Part shown: positions 3 through 40,785 of the stretch, piece after piece
Position numbering within the stretch: position 1 is the first letter of the stretch
How the letters are laid out: every line of letters starts with the position of its first letter
IMG/VR virus record: IMGVR_UViG_3300040801_004532
Span: 184,137 to 248,136 of that record
DNA: 64,000 nt
Strand: one strand, 5' to 3'
The notes under the pieces: model-generated
The model's database searches: none
Told to the model about the DNA's origin: nothing
The model's input: the letters and a program-made list of their open reading frames with translations, nothing else
Program-made: the position numbers and the translations under genes

Positions 3-617
3 TTAAAATACAATTCTGTTGAAGAGTCTGAATTTGATAAAAGCTATCTTGAAAATTATCAAAACAAATTGCATCGTTTAGCCGAAACGGCATCTTCTCT
101 CAACATGGAATTAAAAGAGAGCAACGAACTTGCTGAAATCCTTTTGTTCTGGAAAACCGGATTTTCTCCATCTGGTATCCCATCAATGTTGATTGATGAA
201 GCGATTCCTTTTATGAATGAGAAAATTTCAGAATATTTGGATATGATTACAAACGGAAGATATGTTGTTTCATTTGATACATTAGCTGAAACAAAAGCCG
301 GAGAATTTCGTGATAAGATTTCTGTTCATGTTTTAGATACCTTTACAAGGGCAAATTCAAGAACACAACTTTCAGGCGGTCAAACTAGAATTATTGATAT
401 TGCTACAATTTTGACTCTGGCGGATTTAAATTCAATGATTCAAGATGTCAAAATAAACATCATGCTTTTTGATGAAATCTTTGATAGTTTGGATGATGAA
501 AATGTTGGTTATGTTGCAAAAGTTTTAAATAAGTTAAAAATAGGAAAATCAATTTATATTATTTCACACCAACATCAAGATCATTTGGAGGCTGATGAAA
601 CGCTGAGATTTAACTAA
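3..617 (+). CDS. SbcC/Rad50/T4 gp46-like recombination ATPase, C-terminal part (5' end outside window)
   Basis: ABC signature LSGGQ, Walker B/D-loop LFDEIFDSLD, H-loop IISHQ. The frame is open from position 3, so the track start at 69 is not the real start. Confidence 0.85.
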   Translation, partial: LKYNSVEESEFDKSYLENYQNKLHRLAETASSLNMELKESNELAEILLFWKTGFSPSGIPSMLIDEAIPFMNEKISEYLDMITNGRYVVSFDTLAETKAGEFRDKISVHVLDTFTRANSRTQLSGGQTRIIDIATILTLADLNSMIQDVKINIMLFDEIFDSLDDENVGYVAKVLNKLKIGKSIYIISHQHQDHLEADETLRFN

Positions 618-1000
618 TGAAAATAAAAACAGATTTTGTCACAAATAGTTCATCAACATGCTATATATTTTCATGTAAAAAATATATTCCCAAGGAAGAA
701 TTTGGGTTTAAAAGATTCTTAGCCTTTGATAGCTTTATATGCACAAATAAAAGAGAAGAACTAATTGCATATGCAGATTGTATCCCCGTTAAGAAATGTG
801 ATTGGATAATGTCTGCAATAGGACCATCGAATTTTTATCAACTTTCAGAAAAAGAATTTAGCATGTGTATTGATCTAATAAATGCAGGAAAACACGTAGT
901 TACCGTAAGATTAGATCGTTCACAAGAATATAATATTAACTGTCTTATAGAAAAAATGGAGGAAACAAATTCAGTATTGGTACTCAAGGAGGAACATTGA
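617..1000 (+). CDS. Hypothetical protein of the 'MKIKTDFVTNSSS' N-terminal motif family
   Basis: N-terminus MKIKTDFVTNSSST is the same as that of ORF 39196-39726. Its stop overlaps the radical SAM start. Confidence 0.7.
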   Translation: MKIKTDFVTNSSSTCYIFSCKKYIPKEEFGFKRFLAFDSFICTNKREELIAYADCIPVKKCDWIMSAIGPSNFYQLSEKEFSMCIDLINAGKHVVTVRLDRSQEYNINCLIEKMEETNSVLVLKEEH

Positions 1001-2061
1001 AATCATTAAATACAGCAAAGAGTCCGATAGCAATTGTAAATTGGTTGCTTACAAGAAAATGTAATCTTGAGTGCGACTATTGTGCAATTGTAAAAAATTA
1101 TCCAGACATGCCAAAAAGCTATCCGTTTGTGGGGCATTATTATCAAAATGAAATGTCAACTGAGGTTGTTCTTAAAGCCCTAGAAAAATTTCATAAATAT
1201 AATCCAAATACTTTTCATATCTTTTATGGAGGGGAACCCTTATTAAGAAAAGATTTAGCAACAATAATAAGTTTCTGTAATAACTTGGAGATTCCATATA
1301 CAATAATTAGTAATAACAGCGAAGCTGTGCAGCCTCTAATAGAAAAGCTTTTTGAAGAAGTTGGATTTGTTGAGGGGTTTACAAGCTCTGTTGATCCTAT
1401 TGTCTATACTCAAGAGGATTATGTTGATCCCTCAAGATTACACAAAAGCACTGAAGGATTATCTCGTTTAAAGCATATGAAGAAATGGGCAAATGTTAGG
1501 GACGTGGTTGCTGAAATAACAATTTCACAAGGCATGGAAAATTATTTAATTCCTTTAATTAAAGATTTGAGCGAAAACCAAATTTATAGCGATATTACTT
1601 TCGTTGATATTGCTAAAAATGACTTTTACGATTTTTCAAATGTTAGAGACGAGGAGTTTTTAGTTAAACCAACATTGAAATTAGCAAAGATTTTTCTGGA
1701 GTTACTTGAAAGCGATTATCTAATTCATATGAAAGATCTTCTTCTCCCAGAAATGTTTGATACACTCCCATCAAATTTTGATTGTGATCTTGAAAATCGA
1801 GTCCATAATGTTACAGTTGATGCAGATGGTAGTATGCGCTTATGTCTTAGAATAAAAGGTGAGGTAACTCCAACAATCCATGTTTCAAATTTGTTTGACT
1901 CATCAGGAGCCGTATCAAAAGATTTTTACGATTTAATGTGTGTTGATAAGAGAAGACATTGTGAATTATGCAATCACTCGTGTTTAATGATGAGCAAACA
2001 TATATCCAAAAGACCATCAAAGAAAGATATAATAGATAGTTTATTCCATAGGGAGGACTAA
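997..2061 (+). CDS. Radical SAM protein with C-terminal Cys-containing (SPASM/twitch-like) region
   Basis: CNLECDYC (CxxxCxxC), GGEPLLR motif, C-terminal C261..C and CxxCxxxC. Confidence 0.9.
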   Translation: MKSLNTAKSPIAIVNWLLTRKCNLECDYCAIVKNYPDMPKSYPFVGHYYQNEMSTEVVLKALEKFHKYNPNTFHIFYGGEPLLRKDLATIISFCNNLEIPYTIISNNSEAVQPLIEKLFEEVGFVEGFTSSVDPIVYTQEDYVDPSRLHKSTEGLSRLKHMKKWANVRDVVAEITISQGMENYLIPLIKDLSENQIYSDITFVDIAKNDFYDFSNVRDEEFLVKPTLKLAKIFLELLESDYLIHMKDLLLPEMFDTLPSNFDCDLENRVHNVTVDADGSMRLCLRIKGEVTPTIHVSNLFDSSGAVSKDFYDLMCVDKRRHCELCNHSCLMMSKHISKRPSKKDIIDSLFHRED

Positions 2062-2064
2062 AAG

Positions 2065-2400
2065 ATGCCACAAGCTGACCAAGATGTTATTCGTAGCGCC
2101 ATTGAGTTTTGGGAAAAGGTATATCAGGCGGGAGAAGCAAAGGTAAAATTTACTAAGAAAACAGATGGAACAATCAGAATCATGCGGTTCACTCTTGATT
2201 TTAGCAGGATCCCAAAAAAGCAACATCCAAAAAGTGTAAATATGGCACAGATCCTAAGGTTAATTCAAAAGAGTGGAATTATCCATGTTTATGATTTGGA
2301 CAAAAAAGAGTGGAGATCGGTTCCTTTTAGAAGCGTTGATTGGCTTGAGATCGGAGATGAACGATACAAGATAAGACCATTTAAAAGGGGTGAGAAATGA
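2065..2400 (+). CDS. DUF2693/WYL_2-like SH3-barrel phage protein
   Basis: FTKKTDGTIRIMRFTL and VYDLDKKEWRSV resemble this phage family. Confidence 0.6.
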   Translation: MPQADQDVIRSAIEFWEKVYQAGEAKVKFTKKTDGTIRIMRFTLDFSRIPKKQHPKSVNMAQILRLIQKSGIIHVYDLDKKEWRSVPFRSVDWLEIGDERYKIRPFKRGEK

Positions 2401-2777
2401 CAGTTATAAATGATATTTTGAAAGAAATGAAAACAACAGATCTGACCCAACAGGTCAGACAATTTTGTGATATAATAACAAAAGAAGAAAGAGAAAAATT
2501 TAAAAATCCGGAACTATTACCGAGAGGTGCCAATGTTTTCCTTTCAATTGAAGTACCAGGGAGAAGCGATAAGGAAATCGGTTTTTTAACATTAGAACGT
2601 GAAGGAGAAGAAGACTATTTAATTGTCTATCATACCCTGGAAAAATATAGAGTTTCATCTGATCCAGAGAATATGATACCACCAAGACGAAGAAAAGTAT
2701 GGGCAGTTAATGAAAACAAGGCTGAAAAAATTTTAACCCAGTTTGCTAAAACCGTGAAACTTTTAAGAGGTGAATAA
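2397..2777 (+). CDS. Hypothetical protein
   Basis: ATGA overlap with upstream gene, SD-like GGGTGAG, abuts next gene. Confidence 0.6.
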   Translation: MTVINDILKEMKTTDLTQQVRQFCDIITKEEREKFKNPELLPRGANVFLSIEVPGRSDKEIGFLTLEREGEEDYLIVYHTLEKYRVSSDPENMIPPRRRKVWAVNENKAEKILTQFAKTVKLLRGE

Positions 2778-5351
2778 ATGAAAGATGTTCTGTTAGGTAC
2801 TTCGAATCTAGGAGAAAATCGAGCAGTTGAAGAGATAAGGATTAGCCCAAATTATGCAAATCTGATAATATCAACATTCGAAGGTACAAAGGAGGATGAT
2901 TCTACCCCAGCTATTAAACGAAAAACTATATTCACTAAAGATTATATTTCCAAATTAAATGAGTCAAATAAATTATTTACTGGAAATGTTATGCCTCCGA
3001 ATTGCAGATATATAGAACCAATCAACAGAGGGGTCATTGCAGTTATTGAAGAACCCCCTTCATTTAGGACAATTTTTGTTGATAGAGACCTCCGGGAGGA
3101 ATTTAATGTATTATCAAAACAAGGACGCTTGGATGAATATGAAATACCAAAGAATTTCTTAGAGAAAAACAGACAACCATACTACCTTAATTTAGCAATA
3201 CCTTATACCATCTTTCTTATGTGGATAACGGAATATTTCAGCGTTGGAATAACTGAAGTATATTTTCGTACAAATCAATTGATGGGTCTTTCAGACAACC
3301 TTCTTTTAGCTCCATTTTTAAATATACCAACTGAGCAACGAATTTGCTATCAATCTGGAAATAAATGTATATCCCTAACTGCAGCTATACAACAAGGGAT
3401 TAAGGCCTTTTGGGAATCAACATTTAACTCAGATTATACACACAATTATGAAAGTTATAAAGAAACCCCAGTCGTTGGAAATTATCTTGAATGGCAAGCT
3501 ATGTCTAAAATAAATCCATTGTTTATCTATAACGCAGACTGGCAAGTTAGGCCTTATAATTTAGGTCAAAGAATTAACAATTTAATTGAGCAGGCAGGAG
3601 GAAGGTCAAAAAATAAATTCGGTTATGCAGAACTTGCTGACTTATTTTATTCAAGACTAGATTCAGGCGTTGATATAAAACCTTCTCCAAGATCTAAAAA
3701 TAAATATAGATTGTTTTTTGATATAGCAAATAGTCTATATTTAGATGATATACTTCATATTGAAGTTGGCGATACATTTAAAACACATGATGGAAAGATA
3801 GCATATATTGACTCTCTTGCTGGATTTTCAGATGGGAGCGAAATTAAATATATCCAAATAGATATTAATGGAAAAAAACATCTGATGAAATATACAAAGG
3901 AATGTAAAAAATTCCTTTTTGATAAAGTAAAAGAAGACCGATTTGCCAAAGAATATACGTTATCAAATGGCCAGGTGATTAAGGAAGGTGATATACTTAT
4001 TATAAAACCAACTAAATCTATGGAAATTTTCAGACGAGTTGAATATATAAGAAAAAGCCGTGGCCTTGAAGAAGATGCAGAAATAAGAGTTGGTCGAAAT
4101 TATTACCTTGCATCAAGATTAAAAGCTGAAAAGTTAGATGCTGATGAACCCATATATAAAGGTGTAAAACTAATAAAAGATAAAGAGTATATTATCTCTA
4201 CTGGTGGAGGTGGTATATTTTCTGAGGGTTATAGATGTAAATTTGAAAAACTTGATGCTCACAGAGATTCGTTAGTAGCATCATTTATTCAAAGTGGGGG
4301 ACGAAGACGAACTCTAAACCTGTCGGTTCCAAGACAAACCCAACTAGCTTATCCACTTGATCAAACTAAGCCACTTAAGACAGGAATCTCAAAAATAGGG
4401 AGAAAAGTCTTCACAGTAACTAAAAATGGATCTCATCCAAGCAAAGAAGGAATGTGGCAAGTGGGTCCATCTCTAATATTTGACGGCAGTTATGCAGTAA
4501 ATGCTTTAACTGTTGGGGATTTTATTAAAGAACTATATGATGACGATAAATTTCATATATCCGGGGTAGATTTTGATATTGATTTTGCAATTGGTGAAAA
4601 GGTTGTCGTAGCCAATTGGGAAGACCCCCTTTCTGTTCTATCTGTAAAAACTATTCAGGGGTTTAAGGAAACAGATAATCATTTCGATTTTGTCCTTTCA
4701 GATAAAGCAGGCAATTTAACAACAGAGCAATTTATTGATCCCCAATCAAATATCTATTCTGGCAAAATTAGAAAGGTTACAAATAAATGGGGACGATTAT
4801 CAGTTGGTACAAAAATTATTGCTGATGTACCAGGAATCCCCAACTTTCCGAAGAAGGACGTAAATATTATTGTTGCTTTCATTATTGATATACCAGACGA
4901 ACCGTTAGTATTGTGTTCAAATGGTTGTACGTTATGGTATAACGATGTCGTAGAAAAATTTAAGAAGATAAAGATGGGATCAAAACAATGGGAAAAGCTA
5001 CAACATGTTCCCCTAGATTTATCAAAGATTAAATTTCAGGCAGGGGATGTGGTTAACGGATTCTCTGACTTTAGAGAGTCTGGTGGATACCTTTTATATG
5101 ACCCATCACCAACCAGATCACTGAAAGCAATGCCAATGAATGTTATGCATATTGGAGACGAAGGATATCATTATGTTGCTGATAAATATTTTATGAATGA
5201 TATGATTTTCGATTGTATTCCAGCTCCAAGAGTCGCAACAACTAAAGTTGCCGATTCTGATATAGTTAAGGGATATTTAAATATTAATAGTTACCAGATT
5301 GAAGAAGATGATAGTTCAATATTTTCATTTCTGAAACCAAAGGAGAATTAA
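2778..5351 (+). CDS. Prokaryotic E2 family D (PRTRC protein B-like) domain fused to about 600 aa of beta-rich, possibly SH3/KOW-like, repeats
   Basis: IEEPPSFRTIFV, LAIPYTIF, LLLAPFLNI..ICY and FWESTFNSD resemble Prok-E2_D. Lies directly upstream of JAB and ThiF genes. Confidence 0.65.
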   Translation: MKDVLLGTSNLGENRAVEEIRISPNYANLIISTFEGTKEDDSTPAIKRKTIFTKDYISKLNESNKLFTGNVMPPNCRYIEPINRGVIAVIEEPPSFRTIFVDRDLREEFNVLSKQGRLDEYEIPKNFLEKNRQPYYLNLAIPYTIFLMWITEYFSVGITEVYFRTNQLMGLSDNLLLAPFLNIPTEQRICYQSGNKCISLTAAIQQGIKAFWESTFNSDYTHNYESYKETPVVGNYLEWQAMSKINPLFIYNADWQVRPYNLGQRINNLIEQAGGRSKNKFGYAELADLFYSRLDSGVDIKPSPRSKNKYRLFFDIANSLYLDDILHIEVGDTFKTHDGKIAYIDSLAGFSDGSEIKYIQIDINGKKHLMKYTKECKKFLFDKVKEDRFAKEYTLSNGQVIKEGDILIIKPTKSMEIFRRVEYIRKSRGLEEDAEIRVGRNYYLASRLKAEKLDADEPIYKGVKLIKDKEYIISTGGGGIFSEGYRCKFEKLDAHRDSLVASFIQSGGRRRTLNLSVPRQTQLAYPLDQTKPLKTGISKIGRKVFTVTKNGSHPSKEGMWQVGPSLIFDGSYAVNALTVGDFIKELYDDDKFHISGVDFDIDFAIGEKVVVANWEDPLSVLSVKTIQGFKETDNHFDFVLSDKAGNLTTEQFIDPQSNIYSGKIRKVTNKWGRLSVGTKIIADVPGIPNFPKKDVNIIVAFIIDIPDEPLVLCSNGCTLWYNDVVEKFKKIKMGSKQWEKLQHVPLDLSKIKFQAGDVVNGFSDFRESGGYLLYDPSPTRSLKAMPMNVMHIGDEGYHYVADKYFMNDMIFDCIPAPRVATTKVADSDIVKGYLNINSYQIEEDDSSIFSFLKPKEN

Positions 5352-7057
5352 TGTTTACAGTATTCGTGAATGATGGCACACAGGAAATGCCAGACGATGA
5401 TATTATGTATATTGTTGGGAAAGAGGGTATATTCCTAAAGAAAAAAATGGGAATTATGGAAAGCATTGCTCCCGTTAAAAACATTTCTATTCTAGAGAGT
5501 GTCGGTTCAATGGCGAAAATGCATATTCCGCCCATTCCTGGTCCAACATTTGCAAAGGCGGTTTCCTTTTTCAGAGAAGTTTATAAAGAACATTTTGGAG
5601 AGTCGATTGTTCTTATATTCTTCAATGAAAAAAGTGGAAGATATAAATTATTTCCGCCACATCAAAAGGTTACATCTGCATCATTAGATTACAATAGAGG
5701 CATTACCATCGAAGGATGGACTATGGTTGGAACAATTCATAGTCATGGAGGTATGTCAGCATTCCATTCGGGTGTTGATGATGATGATGAAAAAACATTC
5801 GATGGATTGCATATTACAGTTGGAAATGTAAAAGATGAGGATGTAAGCATCTCTGCATCTATTGTATCCAACGGCTATCGCTTTATGATTGAACCAGAAG
5901 AATATATAAAGCAAGTCAAAAAGACAAAAGAAATTGATGAAGAAAGAACAAGCTATTCAACCAAAGTTTATAAATATGATCCAGTTCAAAAGAAAACTGT
6001 GCTTGATGTAGAGGCAAGCAAAAAAAGAGCCTATAGCTGGAGAAAATATGATAAACGATATAGAGTTATGGTTCCCGAAAGCAAAAGCAAACATCCAGAA
6101 ACATGGATGAACAATGTTGAAAAGGGGACTTATGCCTACAGACGTGGTGGATATTACGGCGGTTATTACGGCAATTATGGGGGATGGGGACATCATTACG
6201 ATAGAAGTGCATGGGGTCAAAGATTCCTGCCTGCCAAAACCCCTACCCAGACAACAAAACCAGGATCACCTCCGTTAAATGTTGGTCCATCGGCCAATGT
6301 AAAACCCGTTGAATTTCCAACTCATGATATACCAGTAGACCCAGATATGCCTTGCCTTACATGCAAGCATAGAGAGTGTAAAATTCTGGGTGAAGCAGAA
6401 GACGAATTTGATGAAGATTTTTATAAATGCGAGAACTGTGGTACCATATACCATGGTGAAATTGATATTTGCGATAAGTGCAATACAGATGATCATTTAA
6501 TTCTTATTGAGGCCAAAGATATGAAAGACCTATATGAGCCTCTTGTTCTTGATGAAATTGACAGAGATGCAGCTATAGCAGCACAACCAGATCAGCTTGG
6601 CTTTACATCATGCCCAGTTTGCAAAAGCGTATTTATGCGATTGGAAACTGATGACGAATGCCCATTTTGTAGTGCAGCGCTTGAAGGAGACAATGAATTA
6701 TTAACAAAACAAGTCGAATGCCCGTGGTGCTATCAAGGGGTATATGAAACAAAATTAGATCATCAACGACGGTGCCCATATTGCCGAAATGAAATCCCTT
6801 TGGATGCCAAACTTTTGACCATAGGATTTGATCCAGATGATGAAATTGAAAATCATATGAGATCTGATTCCGGGCCAGAAGATGAACAATCTGAAGATTT
6901 TCATGAAGAGGTCTTGCGTCAAGCTAAGCAAGCCGACGAATCAATCGAACGAATCCCCGATCCCAGTAAATCTGAAATTCCTATTTCATCCAGATTTACA
7001 GCTAAAAGGATCAAAGATATGATGCGTAAAGCATTTAGGGGGAAAGGTCATGCCTGA
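5351..7057 (+). CDS. JAB/MPN+ metalloprotease (Prok-JAB, PRTRC protein A-like) with Gly/Tyr-rich linker and multiple CxxC zinc ribbons
   Basis: JAMM motif GTIHSHGGMSAFHSGVD (HxH-x7-S-x2-D), DGLHITVG. C-terminal half has CENC/CDKC, CPVC/CPFC and CPWC/CPYC pairs. Confidence 0.85.
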   Translation: MFTVFVNDGTQEMPDDDIMYIVGKEGIFLKKKMGIMESIAPVKNISILESVGSMAKMHIPPIPGPTFAKAVSFFREVYKEHFGESIVLIFFNEKSGRYKLFPPHQKVTSASLDYNRGITIEGWTMVGTIHSHGGMSAFHSGVDDDDEKTFDGLHITVGNVKDEDVSISASIVSNGYRFMIEPEEYIKQVKKTKEIDEERTSYSTKVYKYDPVQKKTVLDVEASKKRAYSWRKYDKRYRVMVPESKSKHPETWMNNVEKGTYAYRRGGYYGGYYGNYGGWGHHYDRSAWGQRFLPAKTPTQTTKPGSPPLNVGPSANVKPVEFPTHDIPVDPDMPCLTCKHRECKILGEAEDEFDEDFYKCENCGTIYHGEIDICDKCNTDDHLILIEAKDMKDLYEPLVLDEIDRDAAIAAQPDQLGFTSCPVCKSVFMRLETDDECPFCSAALEGDNELLTKQVECPWCYQGVYETKLDHQRRCPYCRNEIPLDAKLLTIGFDPDDEIENHMRSDSGPEDEQSEDFHEEVLRQAKQADESIERIPDPSKSEIPISSRFTAKRIKDMMRKAFRGKGHA

Positions 7058-38167: not shown

Positions 38168-39193
38168 ATGGAACAAGCAAGAGAATTGGTAATATTCGAT
38201 AAAATATTTAGAAATGAAAATTATGAACTTTTTTTTAATACCATGTCTGGATTCGAAATTCTTCGTGGTGTAAATGGGAAAGAAGATCCGTTTTGGTTAG
38301 AACTTCCATCTCTATTAGACATTGGAATTATGGGAACCTGCTATCACAATTGTCCATTTTGTTATCAAGGACATATTAAAGAACCAAATATGACTTTTGA
38401 AAATTACAAATGGATAATTAACCAGGTGAAACATCATACAAATCAGGTTGCTCTTGGTGGACGAGGGGACCCAAATAAACATAAGGACTTCAGAAAAATA
38501 GTTGAATATTCCAGGAATAGTGGTGTGGTTCCGAACTATACAACAAGCGGAATCGATCTGACGGATGAAGAAGTGGAGACATCAAAACTATGTGGTGCAA
38601 TAGCCGTGAGTGACTACGAAAAACCCTTTACATACCAAGCCTTAAAAATGTTCATGGATGCAGGTATAAAAACAAATATCCATCAAATTTTCTCATCAGG
38701 AACATTTACAAAATCAATGAAAATAATCTATGGTTATAGTCCATGGCAAAGTCAAAAAAGAGAAAAGGTTGACACTGAAAGATTGAATGCTGTAGTGTTT
38801 CTCCTATTCAAACCTCAAGGAGAAGGAAAAAATATACCAGCATTTATTCCAAGCGAATATCAACTAAAGACATTTTCAGAGATGGTATTAAAAGGCAAAG
38901 CAAAATTCAAAATTGGTATGGATAGTTGTTTGGTTAATCATTTAATAAGATATGCAACTCCAACGGATGGACAAATGATGTCACTTGATACCTGTGAGGG
39001 TGCAAGAATGTCAGCATATATTTCACCTGATTTAAAAATGATGCCTTGCAGCTTTTCAAGAAAAAGCAGTGGAGTACAACTATCAAATAAAAAATCAATA
39101 TCTAATGTATGGGAAAATTCAAGGATTTTCAAATCCTTCAGAAGTAAACTGAAAAGAAAACCGGATAAATGTCCAATAAATTTTGAGGTATAA
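38168..39193 (+). CDS. Radical SAM/SPASM-like protein
   Basis: CYHNCPFC, QVALGG, NYTTSG, C-terminal CEGA..MPCSF..CP. Confidence 0.9.
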   Translation: MEQARELVIFDKIFRNENYELFFNTMSGFEILRGVNGKEDPFWLELPSLLDIGIMGTCYHNCPFCYQGHIKEPNMTFENYKWIINQVKHHTNQVALGGRGDPNKHKDFRKIVEYSRNSGVVPNYTTSGIDLTDEEVETSKLCGAIAVSDYEKPFTYQALKMFMDAGIKTNIHQIFSSGTFTKSMKIIYGYSPWQSQKREKVDTERLNAVVFLLFKPQGEGKNIPAFIPSEYQLKTFSEMVLKGKAKFKIGMDSCLVNHLIRYATPTDGQMMSLDTCEGARMSAYISPDLKMMPCSFSRKSSGVQLSNKKSISNVWENSRIFKSFRSKLKRKPDKCPINFEV

Positions 39194-39195
39194 CC

Positions 39196-39726
39196 ATGAA
39201 GATAAAAACAGACTTTGTAACAAACTCATCTAGTTCATCATTTATAGTTGTTTTTCCTGAAAGGGTAAAATCATTAAACCAAGTAGAAAGATTCATTTCC
39301 CAAGGATATTCAAACACGATATTGAGGGACATAAAAAATCAACAGGCATTAAATGTTAAAAGAAACAGGGAAAAGATAAAAAAACTCTTGATAAAAGAAT
39401 TATGTGATGGAAGTTTAATGGGCAATTATATAGTCCCAGAAAAGGTTGAATATTCTGATTTTCAGAATAAGTTTTGCAAAAGAGAAGGAATTAGCACCAA
39501 AGAATTATATGACAACAAACAATGGTATCACTTATTTCGTGATGAATTTAATCGGGAACAAACAAGGTGGGCAACAGATGCAGCAAACAAGTTTCTTGAA
39601 ACACTTGAAGAAAACTGTTATGTCTATTATTTCCACTATGGAGACGAAGGAGGGGGACTCTACGCACAAATGGAACACGGAGATATCTTCAGAAAGCTCC
39701 CCAATATCAGAATCAGTCACCATTGA
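39196..39726 (+). CDS. Second 'MKIKTDFVTNSSS' family protein
   Basis: N-terminal 13 residues identical to ORF 617-1000. Confidence 0.7.
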   Translation: MKIKTDFVTNSSSSSFIVVFPERVKSLNQVERFISQGYSNTILRDIKNQQALNVKRNREKIKKLLIKELCDGSLMGNYIVPEKVEYSDFQNKFCKREGISTKELYDNKQWYHLFRDEFNREQTRWATDAANKFLETLEENCYVYYFHYGDEGGGLYAQMEHGDIFRKLPNIRISHH

Positions 39727-40281: not shown

Positions 40282-40785
40282 ATGATGCGACGAAGAACAT
40301 TTTGGATTTGTATGGCTTTCATTTCCTTGTGTCTTGTTTTACTCTTCGTTCCGCTTTGTTATAGCGAAACGGACGCGACAAGGATTGGTAAGGTCAAATG
40401 TGTGAACCGAGCCATTCAGGGAGATGATTATATTGAAGTATTGAGAATGGTAGACCCAGATAACCCATTTGTATCAATCTTTTTCACTCGGATAGACTCT
40501 GGAAAAGTATTTGCTATGGCAAACCCGAGTAATACATCTATAGCAACTCGCCTTGTTGGAGAAATTCCAATCGACAAAAATGGTAAAAGGATCATTGATA
40601 CATCTCCTGCTGTCCTTGGAAAATTATCACAATCAATTGGAACCAAGGAGATGAATATAGCTCGTTTCTATGACAAAGAAAAGGATGCATTAGTCTATAT
40701 CGTTTATTCAACAAAATGGCTGGAAGGATCCTTGAAACATTCAATCTCCGTTGTACCATTAGGGAATCCACTAACCTCAAAATAA
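40282..40785 (+). CDS. creA: CreA family periplasmic protein
   Basis: Signal peptide, DPDNP.VS.F, PSNTSIA.R..G.I, YDKEKDALVYIVYSTKWLEGSLKHSISVVP closely follow the CreA consensus. Confidence 0.8.
   Translation: MMRRRTFWICMAFISLCLVLLFVPLCYSETDATRIGKVKCVNRAIQGDDYIEVLRMVDPDNPFVSIFFTRIDSGKVFAMANPSNTSIATRLVGEIPIDKNGKRIIDTSPAVLGKLSQSIGTKEMNIARFYDKEKDALVYIVYSTKWLEGSLKHSISVVPLGNPLTSK

Follow-up and report, generated by a model that had tools for sequence, protein, structure and literature searches.

A conserved N-terminal tag on dissimilar small proteins paired with radical SAM enzymes in a large phage and in bacterial STAND operons

Introduction

The KpAvs2 operon encodes, besides its STAND NTPase, two accessory proteins, the radical SAM protein Avap1 and the small DUF6375-like protein Avap2 (Bechon et al. 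2024, PMC11564622). Avap1 is needed against some phages, makes no detectable viperin-type nucleotide and has no NTP-sized pocket, while Avap2 binds the STAND protein constitutively (PMC11564622). Radical SAM/SPASM enzymes are also coupled to STAND (AP-ATPase) conflict systems in the FxSxx-COOH peptide-processing systems, in which the conserved motif of a small, fast-diverging protein is C-terminal and is released by a zincin peptidase (Kaur et al. 2020, PMC7159879). SPASM and twitch enzymes have a C-terminal Cys-rich region that binds two (SPASM) or one (twitch) auxiliary 4Fe-4S clusters. Other SPASM enzymes are RiPP maturases (sactipeptide, streptide, PqqE and the triceptide 3-CyFE enzymes, PMC11499958) or, like the anaerobic sulfatase-maturating enzymes anSME/AtsB, oxidize a serine in a folded protein substrate.

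We analysed a window of 64,000 nucleotides of a large T4-like phage genome, in which an earlier note, made from the sequence alone, had described a small protein overlapping a radical SAM gene and sharing its 13-residue N-terminus, but nothing else, with a second protein 38 kb away next to a different radical SAM gene. The observation is confirmed and is far beyond chance. The genome in fact carries five small, unrelated-looking proteins that all begin with the same 13-17 residues, two of which sit next to radical SAM enzymes, and the same pairing of tag and enzyme occurs in bacterial STAND (Avs2-like) immunity operons. The tag is therefore probably what the enzyme binds and modifies, the modification itself being inferred.

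Results

Two tagged proteins, each abutting a radical SAM gene

The two tagged proteins of the window (Table 1) share the N-terminus MKIKTDFVTNSSS. The ATG of copy 1 overlaps the TAA of the SbcC/gp46-like gene, and the TTG start codon of the downstream radical SAM gene (rSAM1) overlaps the TGA of copy 1 by 4 nt, with AAGGAGG 6 nt upstream. Copy 2, 38.6 kb away, begins 2 nt after the stop codon of a different radical SAM gene (rSAM2). BLASTP found 14/17 identities at the two N-termini and nothing else, and the two enzymes share only the radical SAM core. The three serines are encoded by AGT-TCA-TCA in copy 1 and by TCA-TCT-AGT in copy 2, so that conservation is at the protein level; likewise, positions 11-13 mix AGY and TCN codons across 123 viral copies.

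Table 1. Coordinates (window numbering) and properties of the features discussed
Feature	Position	Strand	Length	Description and supporting results
SbcC/gp46-like ATPase, C-terminal part	3..617	+		Context only, conserved upstream neighbour of copy 1; phrog_77 at 1e-38; synteny Mre11-x-SbcC-tagged protein-rSAM1 in loci L002-L006
Tagged protein, copy 1	617..1000	+	127 aa	Starts MKIKTDFVTNSSSTCYI; AF2 model pLDDT 88 with residues 1-10 below 50; predicted disordered N-terminal arm (residues 1-10) and ferredoxin-like alpha/beta body; only generic ferredoxin/ACT-like fold matches, Z up to 5.9; hhalign to the bacterial tagged proteins 99.2% over 96 columns
Tag of copy 1	617..670	+	codons 1-18	Consensus M-K-I-K-x-D-F-V-T-N-S-S-S-[TSA]-S-[FY]-[IV]-[VI] from column counts over 143 viral copies; invariant columns in two alignments
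rSAM1	997..2061	+	354 aa	CNLECDYC; Pfam Radical_SAM (PF04055) at 2.4e-10, above cut-off; C22/C26/C29 and five C-terminal Cys invariant in the family alignment; no N-terminal extension; no SPASM hit; PDB profile hits MoaA at 2.6e-6 and ChlB at 5.5e-4, core only
126-aa protein	2397..2777		126 aa	Not the arm-less paralogue of the bacterial cassettes
rSAM2	38168..39193	+	341 aa	Twitch-like; Pfam Radical_SAM at 7.2e-6 (26.7 bits, cut-off 29.5) and SPASM at 0.0031, both below cut-off; phrog_7293 at 7e-25; C58/C62/C65 and four C-terminal Cys invariant; conserved N-terminal strand (residues about 19-47)
Tagged protein, copy 2	39196..39726	+	176 aa	Starts MKIKTDFVTNSSSSSFI; phrog_7397; C-terminal motif YGDE..EHG..RISHH; AF2 pLDDT 90 with residues 1-9 below 50; no PDB fold match

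Two features had escaped the earlier note. First, an N-terminal HMM scored exactly five proteins of the genome at 44-54 bits, against less than 7 bits for everything else, and the three additional proteins lie 3.4-4.7 kb upstream of the window. Second, the motif extends to about residue 18.

A strictly N-terminal motif on diverse bodies

To determine how widespread the tag is, we searched protein clusters with an N-terminal profile, which returned 6,385 clusters. Nearly all are 80-190 aa long, acidic (median net charge -8) and carry the motif at residue 1, while their bodies mostly share no detectable similarity: 148 copies fell into 27 BLAST clusters, with mostly no hhalign signal between them, and 126 representatives fell into 51 clusters. 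Outside the tag, nothing is conserved across body families. Note that fused two-domain proteins (P0057-P0059) carry the motif internally, so that a free N-terminus may not be required.

Pfam, NCBIfam and PHROGs gave no function for either tagged protein. A Pfam scan of 123 tagged proteins gave single-member hits to CTI, Peptidase_S74 and DUF7487. Both AF2 monomer models leave the arm unstructured and start the fold at residue 13. Searches with these models found no specific relative: Foldseek against the PDB gave nothing at E 0.001 or better, VIA-align gave Z up to 5.9, covering only helical or generic ferredoxin-like matches, and the Atlas returned only viral hypothetical proteins. A full-text literature search for the motif found nothing relevant, and Campylobacter phage CP220, known for its 11 radical SAM genes (PMC2853527), has no such motif.

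These data bear on two alternative readings of the tag. The tagged proteins could be small enzymes whose conserved N-terminus (N-S-S-S before strand 1) is their own active or ligand-binding site, the radical SAM genes being mere pathway neighbours. Indeed, the family of copy 2 has a second conserved motif rich in metal ligands (YGDEDG..EMEHG..RISHH), and many bodies have an acidic residue after the penultimate strand. We consider this reading improbable, since nothing outside the tag is conserved across body families, residues 1-10 are predicted to be disordered rather than part of a pocket, and no match to any enzyme fold was found. The tag could also be a capsid-targeting or other sorting signal, like that of the T4 internal proteins (MKTYQEFIAE), without any link to radical SAM chemistry: by inspection only, the pattern MK-x-x-x-[DE]-F-[IV] resembles the T4 signal, and the proteins are variable small paralogues in tandem in a T4-like phage. 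This idea was rejected as very unlikely, because the same tag occurs in bacterial chromosomes and plasmids inside STAND operons, the proteins are acidic, unlike the basic internal proteins, the tag contains no L/I-x-E cleavage site, and linkage to radical SAM genes is tight.

Linkage of the tag to two radical SAM families

The earlier note had made enrichment of the motif next to radical SAM genes a test of its proposal, and we examined it from both sides. In viral loci chosen by the motif, CxxxCxxC genes form only two families, and 37 of 38 have a tagged gene within 450 bp. The order is fixed (rSAM2 then tag; tag then rSAM1) while the body types vary. In viral loci chosen by the enzyme alone, a tagged gene lies downstream of rSAM2 in 43 of 79 and within 1 kb upstream of rSAM1 in 6 of 25, as compared to 0 of 29 for unrelated viral radical SAM genes. 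Adjacency is not obligatory: 36 of 79 rSAM2 loci and 19 of 25 rSAM1 loci have no tagged gene within the flanks examined, and in KP27/RB43-like phages (KP27 and Lw1 among them) the two genes lie about 20 kb apart. In these RB43/KP27-like phages the two families nevertheless co-occur, 163 records holding the tagged family and 172 the enzyme family, with nearly the same host breakdown. Many of the viral loci come from related phages and are thus not independent events.

The link is strong for rSAM2 but clearly weaker for rSAM1. It is possible, although we regard it as the less likely alternative, that the adjacency of copy 1 and rSAM1 is partly or wholly synteny inherited in a variable region rich in tagged genes (three of them lie 3-5 kb upstream in the same region), and that rSAM1 works on another substrate, for instance a nucleotide or a cofactor. 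Indeed, rSAM1 lacks the N-terminal docking strand predicted for rSAM2, is not related to the bacterial cassette enzyme described below beyond the core, and has viperin and MoaA as its best named neighbours. On the other hand, every member found of the copy 1 family lies beside rSAM1 (10 of 10, eight directly and two with one 126-aa gene between), and three different body types sit directly upstream of rSAM1, often with overlapping stop and start codons.

The same pairing in bacterial STAND cassettes

The pair is not phage-specific and recurs independently in bacteria of many phyla, where we found 24 unique cassettes of a STAND NTPase, an arm-less paralogue of the tagged protein, a tagged protein and a radical SAM/SPASM enzyme, in addition to examples on Agrobacterium pAt and in a Klebsiella aerogenes island. 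The enzyme of these cassettes is homologous to rSAM2 (hhalign 100%, E 2.3e-81); the bacterial homologues score 47-61 bits against Radical_SAM and have eight invariant Cys and precomputed PF13186 hits. rSAM1 has no bacterial counterpart.

The cassettes resemble the KpAvs2-Avap1-Avap2 operon in that the homologues of rSAM2 lie beside Avs2-like STAND NTPases (PADLOC Avs2 at 2e-24) together with small proteins of about 130 aa, and in that no substrate is known for the radical SAM protein of either system. They differ in having four genes instead of three. The window itself has no STAND gene beside either pair and therefore holds relatives of operon parts, not the operon. With HMMER, a method other than the HHsearch used in the KpAvs2 study, neither the tagged proteins nor the arm-less paralogues matched PF19902 (DUF6375), and no match was found in 5 cassette-bearing genomes or in 401 Bacillota genomes, in a search in which the control genomes did not match either, so that this result says little. 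Neither the N-terminal tag nor phage-borne, multiplied copies appear in the main text of that paper.

A predicted arm-in-barrel complex

To examine whether the tag could contact the enzyme, we co-folded rSAM2 and copy 2 with SAM and two 4Fe-4S clusters. Against 0.01 for the best control, the complex scored an ipSAE of 0.71, a mark reached by 58 of 80 solved complexes and 2 of 110 mismatched pairs. Of the three runs (0.16, 0.76 and 0.71), one thus scored low; the runs agree in at least 32% of contacts, and partner pLDDT is at least 58. The predicted interface consists of exactly residues 1-10 of the tag facing enzyme residues 27-33 (including the family-invariant G28 and E30) and barrel residues 93, 95, 121-125, 143-146, 168-172, 207-210 and 248-250, many of them family-invariant.

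A co-fold supports binding but does not show it, and it does not distinguish a substrate from a partner. The tagged protein could be a stable subunit or regulator of the enzyme, or an adaptor between the enzyme and a STAND NTPase, with the arm as a docking peptide that is bound but not chemically changed and with something else as the true substrate. The constitutive binding of Avap2 to its STAND protein is compatible with this view, and the arm-less paralogues of the bacterial cassettes suggest protein-protein roles for the body. We nevertheless consider it unlikely, since the arm is predicted to enter the barrel lined by family-invariant residues rather than to contact a surface patch, since several different tagged paralogues per enzyme fit substrates better than subunits, and since SPASM/twitch enzymes, judging from the NCBIfam neighbours, typically act on peptides or proteins.

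Discussion

The earlier note's interpretation, in which the motif is a recognition or modification tag on variable cargo in a phage RiPP-like or protein-maturation system, is partly supported: the motif behaves as a conserved tag on very diverse bodies and is strongly linked to radical SAM genes, but the system is neither phage-specific nor RiPP-like in the usual sense, and the evidence is weaker for the very pair that the note had singled out (copy 1 and rSAM1) than for copy 2 and rSAM2.

The most likely reading, which we hold with moderate confidence, is that the window contains two instances of a widespread two-gene module made of a radical SAM maturase of the SPASM/twitch kind and a small, usually acidic alpha/beta protein, its putative substrate, whose first 10-12 residues form a flexible, nearly invariant arm anchored by beta-strand 1 (residues 13-20). 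In this model, the arm would thread into the lateral opening of the enzyme's barrel, after pairing, for the rSAM2 family, with the conserved N-terminal strand of the enzyme, and the 5'-deoxyadenosyl radical would then modify a residue of the D-F-V-T-N-S-S-S segment. The rest of the protein would be free to diverge, which would explain one tag on dozens of dissimilar bodies and several tagged paralogues per enzyme. In bacteria the module belongs to Avs2-like STAND NTPase immunity operons, whereas in large T4-like phages it stands alone and is multiplied, most plausibly as part of the phage-host conflict (counter-defence or mimicry). The motif, its spread, the gene linkage and the homology to the bacterial cassette enzyme are established by our analysis; arm-in-barrel binding is a prediction, and that the arm is the substrate, as well as the chemistry and the biological role, is inferred.

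As in the FxSxx-COOH systems, a small, fast-diverging protein with a conserved terminal motif containing F-x-S is associated with a radical SAM/SPASM gene and with STAND NTPases, but here the motif is at residue 1, no peptidase is linked and the partner is a folded domain. As for RiPP maturases, a probable SPASM/twitch-type enzyme lies beside its protein partner, a conserved putative recognition segment is followed by a variable remainder, several putative precursors exist per enzyme, and the nearly invariant F7-V8-T/S9 fits the aromatic-X-X motif of triceptides, which a dedicated radical SAM/SPASM enzyme crosslinks from the ring to C-beta. However, no leader/core split or exporter was found, the Pfam scans showed no RRE or protease and no such neighbour was seen, the conserved part is the presumed target itself, the partners are predicted to fold as whole domains of 90-230 aa, and sequence similarity to characterized maturases is limited to the core (SkfB at 5.6e-4, ChlB at 5.5e-4). 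As the arm has no Cys, Trp or Tyr, classic sactipeptide or streptide chemistry does not apply. anSME provides a chemical precedent for a Ser-rich target, but its target motif (C/S-x-P-x-R) is absent, and no specific match to anSME models appeared in the best 25 of 52 rSAM1 matches or among the 19 rSAM2 matches.

A more speculative possibility, doubtful on present evidence, is that the arm undergoes a so far undescribed radical SAM modification made on folded proteins, for example a Phe7-to-Thr/Ser9 cyclophane or a serine oxidation, and that the modified arm would serve as a signal or latch for Avs2-type STAND immune receptors. The five tagged proteins and two enzymes of this phage would then be mimics that jam or trigger the receptor, a new layer of phage-host conflict built on a post-translational mark.

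Our analysis proposes a concrete substrate for a radical SAM enzyme family whose role in a published anti-phage system (Avap1 of KpAvs2) is unknown. It also defines, by one N-terminal motif, a very large, unnamed family of small proteins (at least 6,385 clusters), and shows that the same motif-plus-enzyme module is shared between bacterial STAND immunity operons and big T4-like phages, including cultured Klebsiella, Enterobacter and Escherichia phages such as KP27, RB43 and Lw1. If the phage copies interfere with STAND immunity, they would be a new kind of counter-defence.

Genomic setting of the tagged genes

The window is the last 64 kb of a 248-kb virus record, which CheckV rates 79% complete. 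It belongs to a T4-like phage, as recognized by SbcC/gp46-like and Mre11/gp47-like genes, a tail sheath and a T4 baseplate in relatives. The ATG of copy 1 of the tagged protein overlaps the stop codon of the SbcC-like gene, and the next gene, which encodes the radical SAM enzyme rSAM1, starts at a TTG that overlaps the TGA of copy 1 and is preceded, 6 nt upstream, by a strong Shine-Dalgarno sequence. Copy 2 begins 2 nt after the stop codon of a second radical SAM gene, rSAM2. The two small proteins share 14 of their first 17 residues and nothing else that BLASTP can detect, while the two enzymes share only the radical SAM core. The serines of the motif are specified by different codon families in the two copies, so the match is kept at the protein level.

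To determine whether further copies exist, we searched the whole genome with a sequence pattern and with an N-terminal HMM, which identified exactly five such proteins (44–54 bits, the next ORF scoring 6.8 bits), i.e. three more than the earlier note had recorded. These three lie in tandem 3.4–4.7 kb upstream of the window, each with a different body, and are followed by a prepilin-like gene, then by Mre11, SbcC, copy 1 and rSAM1. The prepilin-like protein carries a type IV prepilin N-terminal methylation motif (N_methyl, 8.5e-7) and is conserved in L005, one of the related loci. Downstream of rSAM1 lie a WYL_2 protein, a 126-aa ORF, a protein with a weak Prok-E2_D match (8.4e-5) and a protein with a Prok-JAB match (1.3e-5); this arrangement, which is syntenic in the related loci L002–L006, may represent a phage-borne ubiquitin-like conjugation/deconjugation pair. 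A QueD/PTPS-like gene (2.8e-32) near the tagged-gene array and a third radical SAM-like ORF elsewhere in the genome may together indicate a 7-deazaguanine pathway.

Coordinates of the features discussed (L022 is a stretch of the same genome upstream of the window; G000:C1 denotes the virus record; the other L numbers denote loci from other genomes)
Feature	Sequence	Coordinates	Strand	Length (aa)
Tagged protein, copy 1	window	617-1000		127
rSAM1	window	997-2061		354
WYL_2 protein, 126-aa ORF, Prok-E2_D-like and Prok-JAB-like proteins	window	2065-7057 (WYL_2: 2065-2400)		126 (ORF), 857 (Prok-E2_D-like), 568 (Prok-JAB-like)
rSAM2	window	38168-39193		341
Tagged protein, copy 2	window	39196-39726		176
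CreA-family protein	window	40282-40785		
Three tandem tagged paralogues	L022 (G000:C1:180062-181315)	4063-4407, 4411-4707, 4885-5316		114, 98, 143
Prepilin-like protein	L022	5294-5542		82
QueD/PTPS-like gene	L022	2220-2642		
Third radical SAM-like ORF	G000:C1	45461-45718	-	223
Tagged genes KP27_130 and KP27_124 flanking KP27_128 (vWA domain)	L001 (Klebsiella phage KP27)	4001-8371		738 (KP27_128)
Long tagged proteins, Clostridia MAGs	L237; L256; L267	3203-4717; 2755-4293; 5672-7204		about 480-510
Arm-less paralogue, bacterial cassette	L281	5191-5616		

Size and diversity of the tagged family

An exact degenerate-DNA scan of viral contigs returned at least 118 stretches, and the 80 loci retrieved hold 143 tagged ORFs of 83–234 aa, with up to five in tandem. 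The consensus is M-K-I-K-x-D-F-V-T-N-S-S-S-[TSA]-S-[FY]-[IV]-[VI], with both AGY and TCN codons used at positions 11–13. When the tag is removed, the bodies fall into 27 BLAST clusters, and profile-profile comparison between the larger clusters is mostly silent, the best pairs reaching 78% and 50%. A 32-column profile of the N-terminus, searched against 1.84 billion representative proteins, identified 6,385 clusters at E 0.001 or better, almost all of which have the motif at residue 1 and lengths of 80–190 aa. The 126 longest of the best hits form 51 body clusters and have a median net charge of -8. Some of these proteins (P0057, P0058 and P0059) consist of two fused tagged domains, so that the second motif is internal; P0057, for example, has ...PEDFVTNSSSTSF... 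at about residue 115. None of the library scans names the family. In a Pfam scan, single members among 123 tagged representatives gave hits to CTI (1.3e-17), Peptidase_S74 (3.6e-9) and DUF7487 (4.1e-8).

AF2 models of copies 2 and 1 are confident (pLDDT 90 and 88, respectively), apart from residues 1–9/10. The predicted fold starts with a strand at residues 13–20 and ends with a strand–helix–strand unit. The copy 1 model resembles generic ferredoxin/ACT-like domains at Z up to 5.9, whereas the copy 2 model has no match in the fold searches. The copy 1 family aligns to the bacterial tagged proteins over 96 columns at 99.2%. The bodies are therefore probably very diverged versions of one small fold, with a free N-terminal arm.

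Linkage to radical SAM genes in phages

Of the 80 motif-chosen loci, 38 hold a CxxxCxxC ORF. Together with the two window enzymes, these form exactly two families, rSAM2-like (30) and rSAM1-like (10), and 37 of the 38 have a tagged gene within 450 bp on the same strand. The order is fixed (rSAM2 then tag, and tag then rSAM1), while the body type varies: clusters 0, 1, 3, 5, 8, 10 and 24 lie after rSAM2, and clusters 9, 11 and 6 lie before rSAM1.

Since these loci had been chosen by the motif, we repeated the test from the enzyme side. Of 79 usable loci chosen by rSAM2 similarity, 34 have a tagged gene directly downstream and 9 more within 1 kb, whereas 36 have none in 3 kb; in the latter, the enzyme is followed by a gene of about 200 aa and a CreA-like gene. 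The CreA-family protein of the window (4.9e-23), which has a signal-like N-terminus, is a conserved neighbor downstream of the rSAM2 locus in many relatives, whether or not the tagged gene is present. Of 25 usable loci chosen by rSAM1 similarity, 5 have a tagged gene directly upstream and 1 within 1 kb. By contrast, of 29 unrelated viral radical SAM genes caught by the same scan, none has one within 2.5 kb.

In cultured Straboviridae (KP27, KP15, RB43, Lw1 and relatives), the copy 2 family occurs in 163 records and the rSAM2 family in 172, with almost the same host breakdown, although the two genes are about 20 kb apart there. KP27 and Lw1 each have two tagged genes, which in KP27 (KP27_130 and KP27_124) flank a gene for a vWA-domain protein (KP27_128); vWA proteins are core parts of the ternary conflict systems described by Kaur et al. 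2020 (PMC7159879).

Linkage in bacterial and archaeal assemblies

The same DNA pattern occurs in 54 stretches of bacterial and archaeal assemblies from many phyla, including the isolate Tissierella praeacuta DSM 18095, several of them on contigs of 2.8–6.4 Mb. A cassette of four genes was observed in 24 non-identical loci: it encodes a large protein of 520–1074 aa, a protein of about 125–150 aa, a tagged protein of 124–139 aa and a radical SAM/SPASM protein of 341–402 aa. The large protein is a STAND NTPase, which matches the PADLOC Avs2 models (2e-24) and carries SMEK_N, trypsin-like or NACHT/nSTAND parts. The same cassette is annotated on Agrobacterium tumefaciens pAt and lies in a Klebsiella aerogenes island next to AlpA and HNH genes.

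The cassette enzyme is a clear homologue of phage rSAM2 (hhalign, 100%, E 2.3e-81, 36% identity over 310 columns, including the N-terminal region) but is not a homologue of rSAM1, and its family has at least 1,284 members at E 1e-10 or better. The second small protein of the cassette, encoded between the STAND gene and the tagged gene, is a paralogue of the tagged one that lacks the arm (hhalign, 95.6%). Two other arrangements were observed. Clostridia MAGs carry long tagged proteins (motif ...DFVTNSSSE...) directly after an rSAM2-like gene, and Thermoplasmatales and Promethearchaeota MAG contigs (L233, L251, L266 and L272) carry tandem arrays of 2–4 tagged genes, in L251 directly after an rSAM2-like gene. 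The latter contigs look viral and may be mis-binned.

Comparison with published systems

Bechon et al. 2024 (PMC11564622) describe a Klebsiella Avs2 operon with two accessory genes. Avap1, a radical SAM protein, is needed against phage T2 but not SECphi18, produces no viperin-type products and has no NTP-sized pocket. Avap2 has an HHpred hit to DUF6375, binds Avs2, is needed for defence and apparently cannot be deleted. About 5% of Avs2 homologues have such partners, and the bacterial cassette found here is of this kind. HMMER finds no DUF6375 signal in either small protein, and any equivalence between the tagged protein and Avap2 is putative. Our literature search found no description of the N-terminal motif or of its phage copies. 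A parallel is provided by the FxSxx-COOH proteins of Kaur et al. 2020 (PMC7159879), which occur with a radical SAM/SPASM gene and a peptidase and are coupled to STAND NTPases; in that system, the motif is C-terminal.

Predicted contact between the arm and rSAM2

To assess whether the tag could contact the enzyme, we co-folded rSAM2 and copy 2 with SAM and two 4Fe-4S clusters. The score was ipSAE 0.71 (runs 0.16, 0.76 and 0.71) against a best control of 0.01, a mark that was reached by 58 of 80 solved complexes and 2 of 110 mismatched pairs; these counts hold only roughly, because our own alignments and ligands were used. The runs agree in at least 32% of contacts, and partner pLDDT is at least 58. 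The confident interface is made only of partner residues 1–10, which lie against enzyme residues 27–33, a strand holding the family-invariant G28 and E30, and against barrel residues that include the invariant Q93, A95, P122–T125, G143–A146, K168, N170, H172, N207, K248 and G250. This prediction supports binding but does not show it, and says nothing about the chemistry.

Interpretation

The observation reported in the earlier note, namely that two otherwise dissimilar proteins share an N-terminus and each adjoin a different radical SAM gene, holds true and extends well beyond these two copies. The note's proposal that the motif is a recognition or modification tag in a phage RiPP-like or protein-maturation system is supported only in part. 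We take the arm to be the substrate of the enzyme, because it is the only part conserved across body types and between phages and bacteria, because it is predicted to enter the barrel, because several tagged paralogues can share one enzyme, and because SPASM/twitch enzymes mostly act on peptides and proteins. The arm has no Cys, Trp or Tyr; candidate modifications are an aromatic-to-C-beta crosslink on F7-V8-T/S9, which fits the triceptide motif (PMC11499958), oxidation of a serine, as performed by anSME, and epimerization.

The case is weaker for copy 1 and rSAM1. All copy 1-family genes lie beside rSAM1 (10 of 10, two of them with one 126-aa gene between). However, most rSAM1 genes lack a tagged neighbor within 2.5 kb, and rSAM1 has no counterpart of the predicted docking strand and no bacterial counterpart, its nearest named relatives being viperin and MoaA.

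Altogether, while the motif, its spread and its association with radical SAM genes were observed directly, the role of the arm as a substrate is inferred. We consider it more likely than not that these are maturase-substrate pairs, with greater confidence for rSAM2 and less for rSAM1, and we are rather confident that the tag and the rSAM2-type enzyme are functionally linked. The biological role, which is inferred from context only, would be immunity in bacteria, and counter-defence or mimicry in phages.
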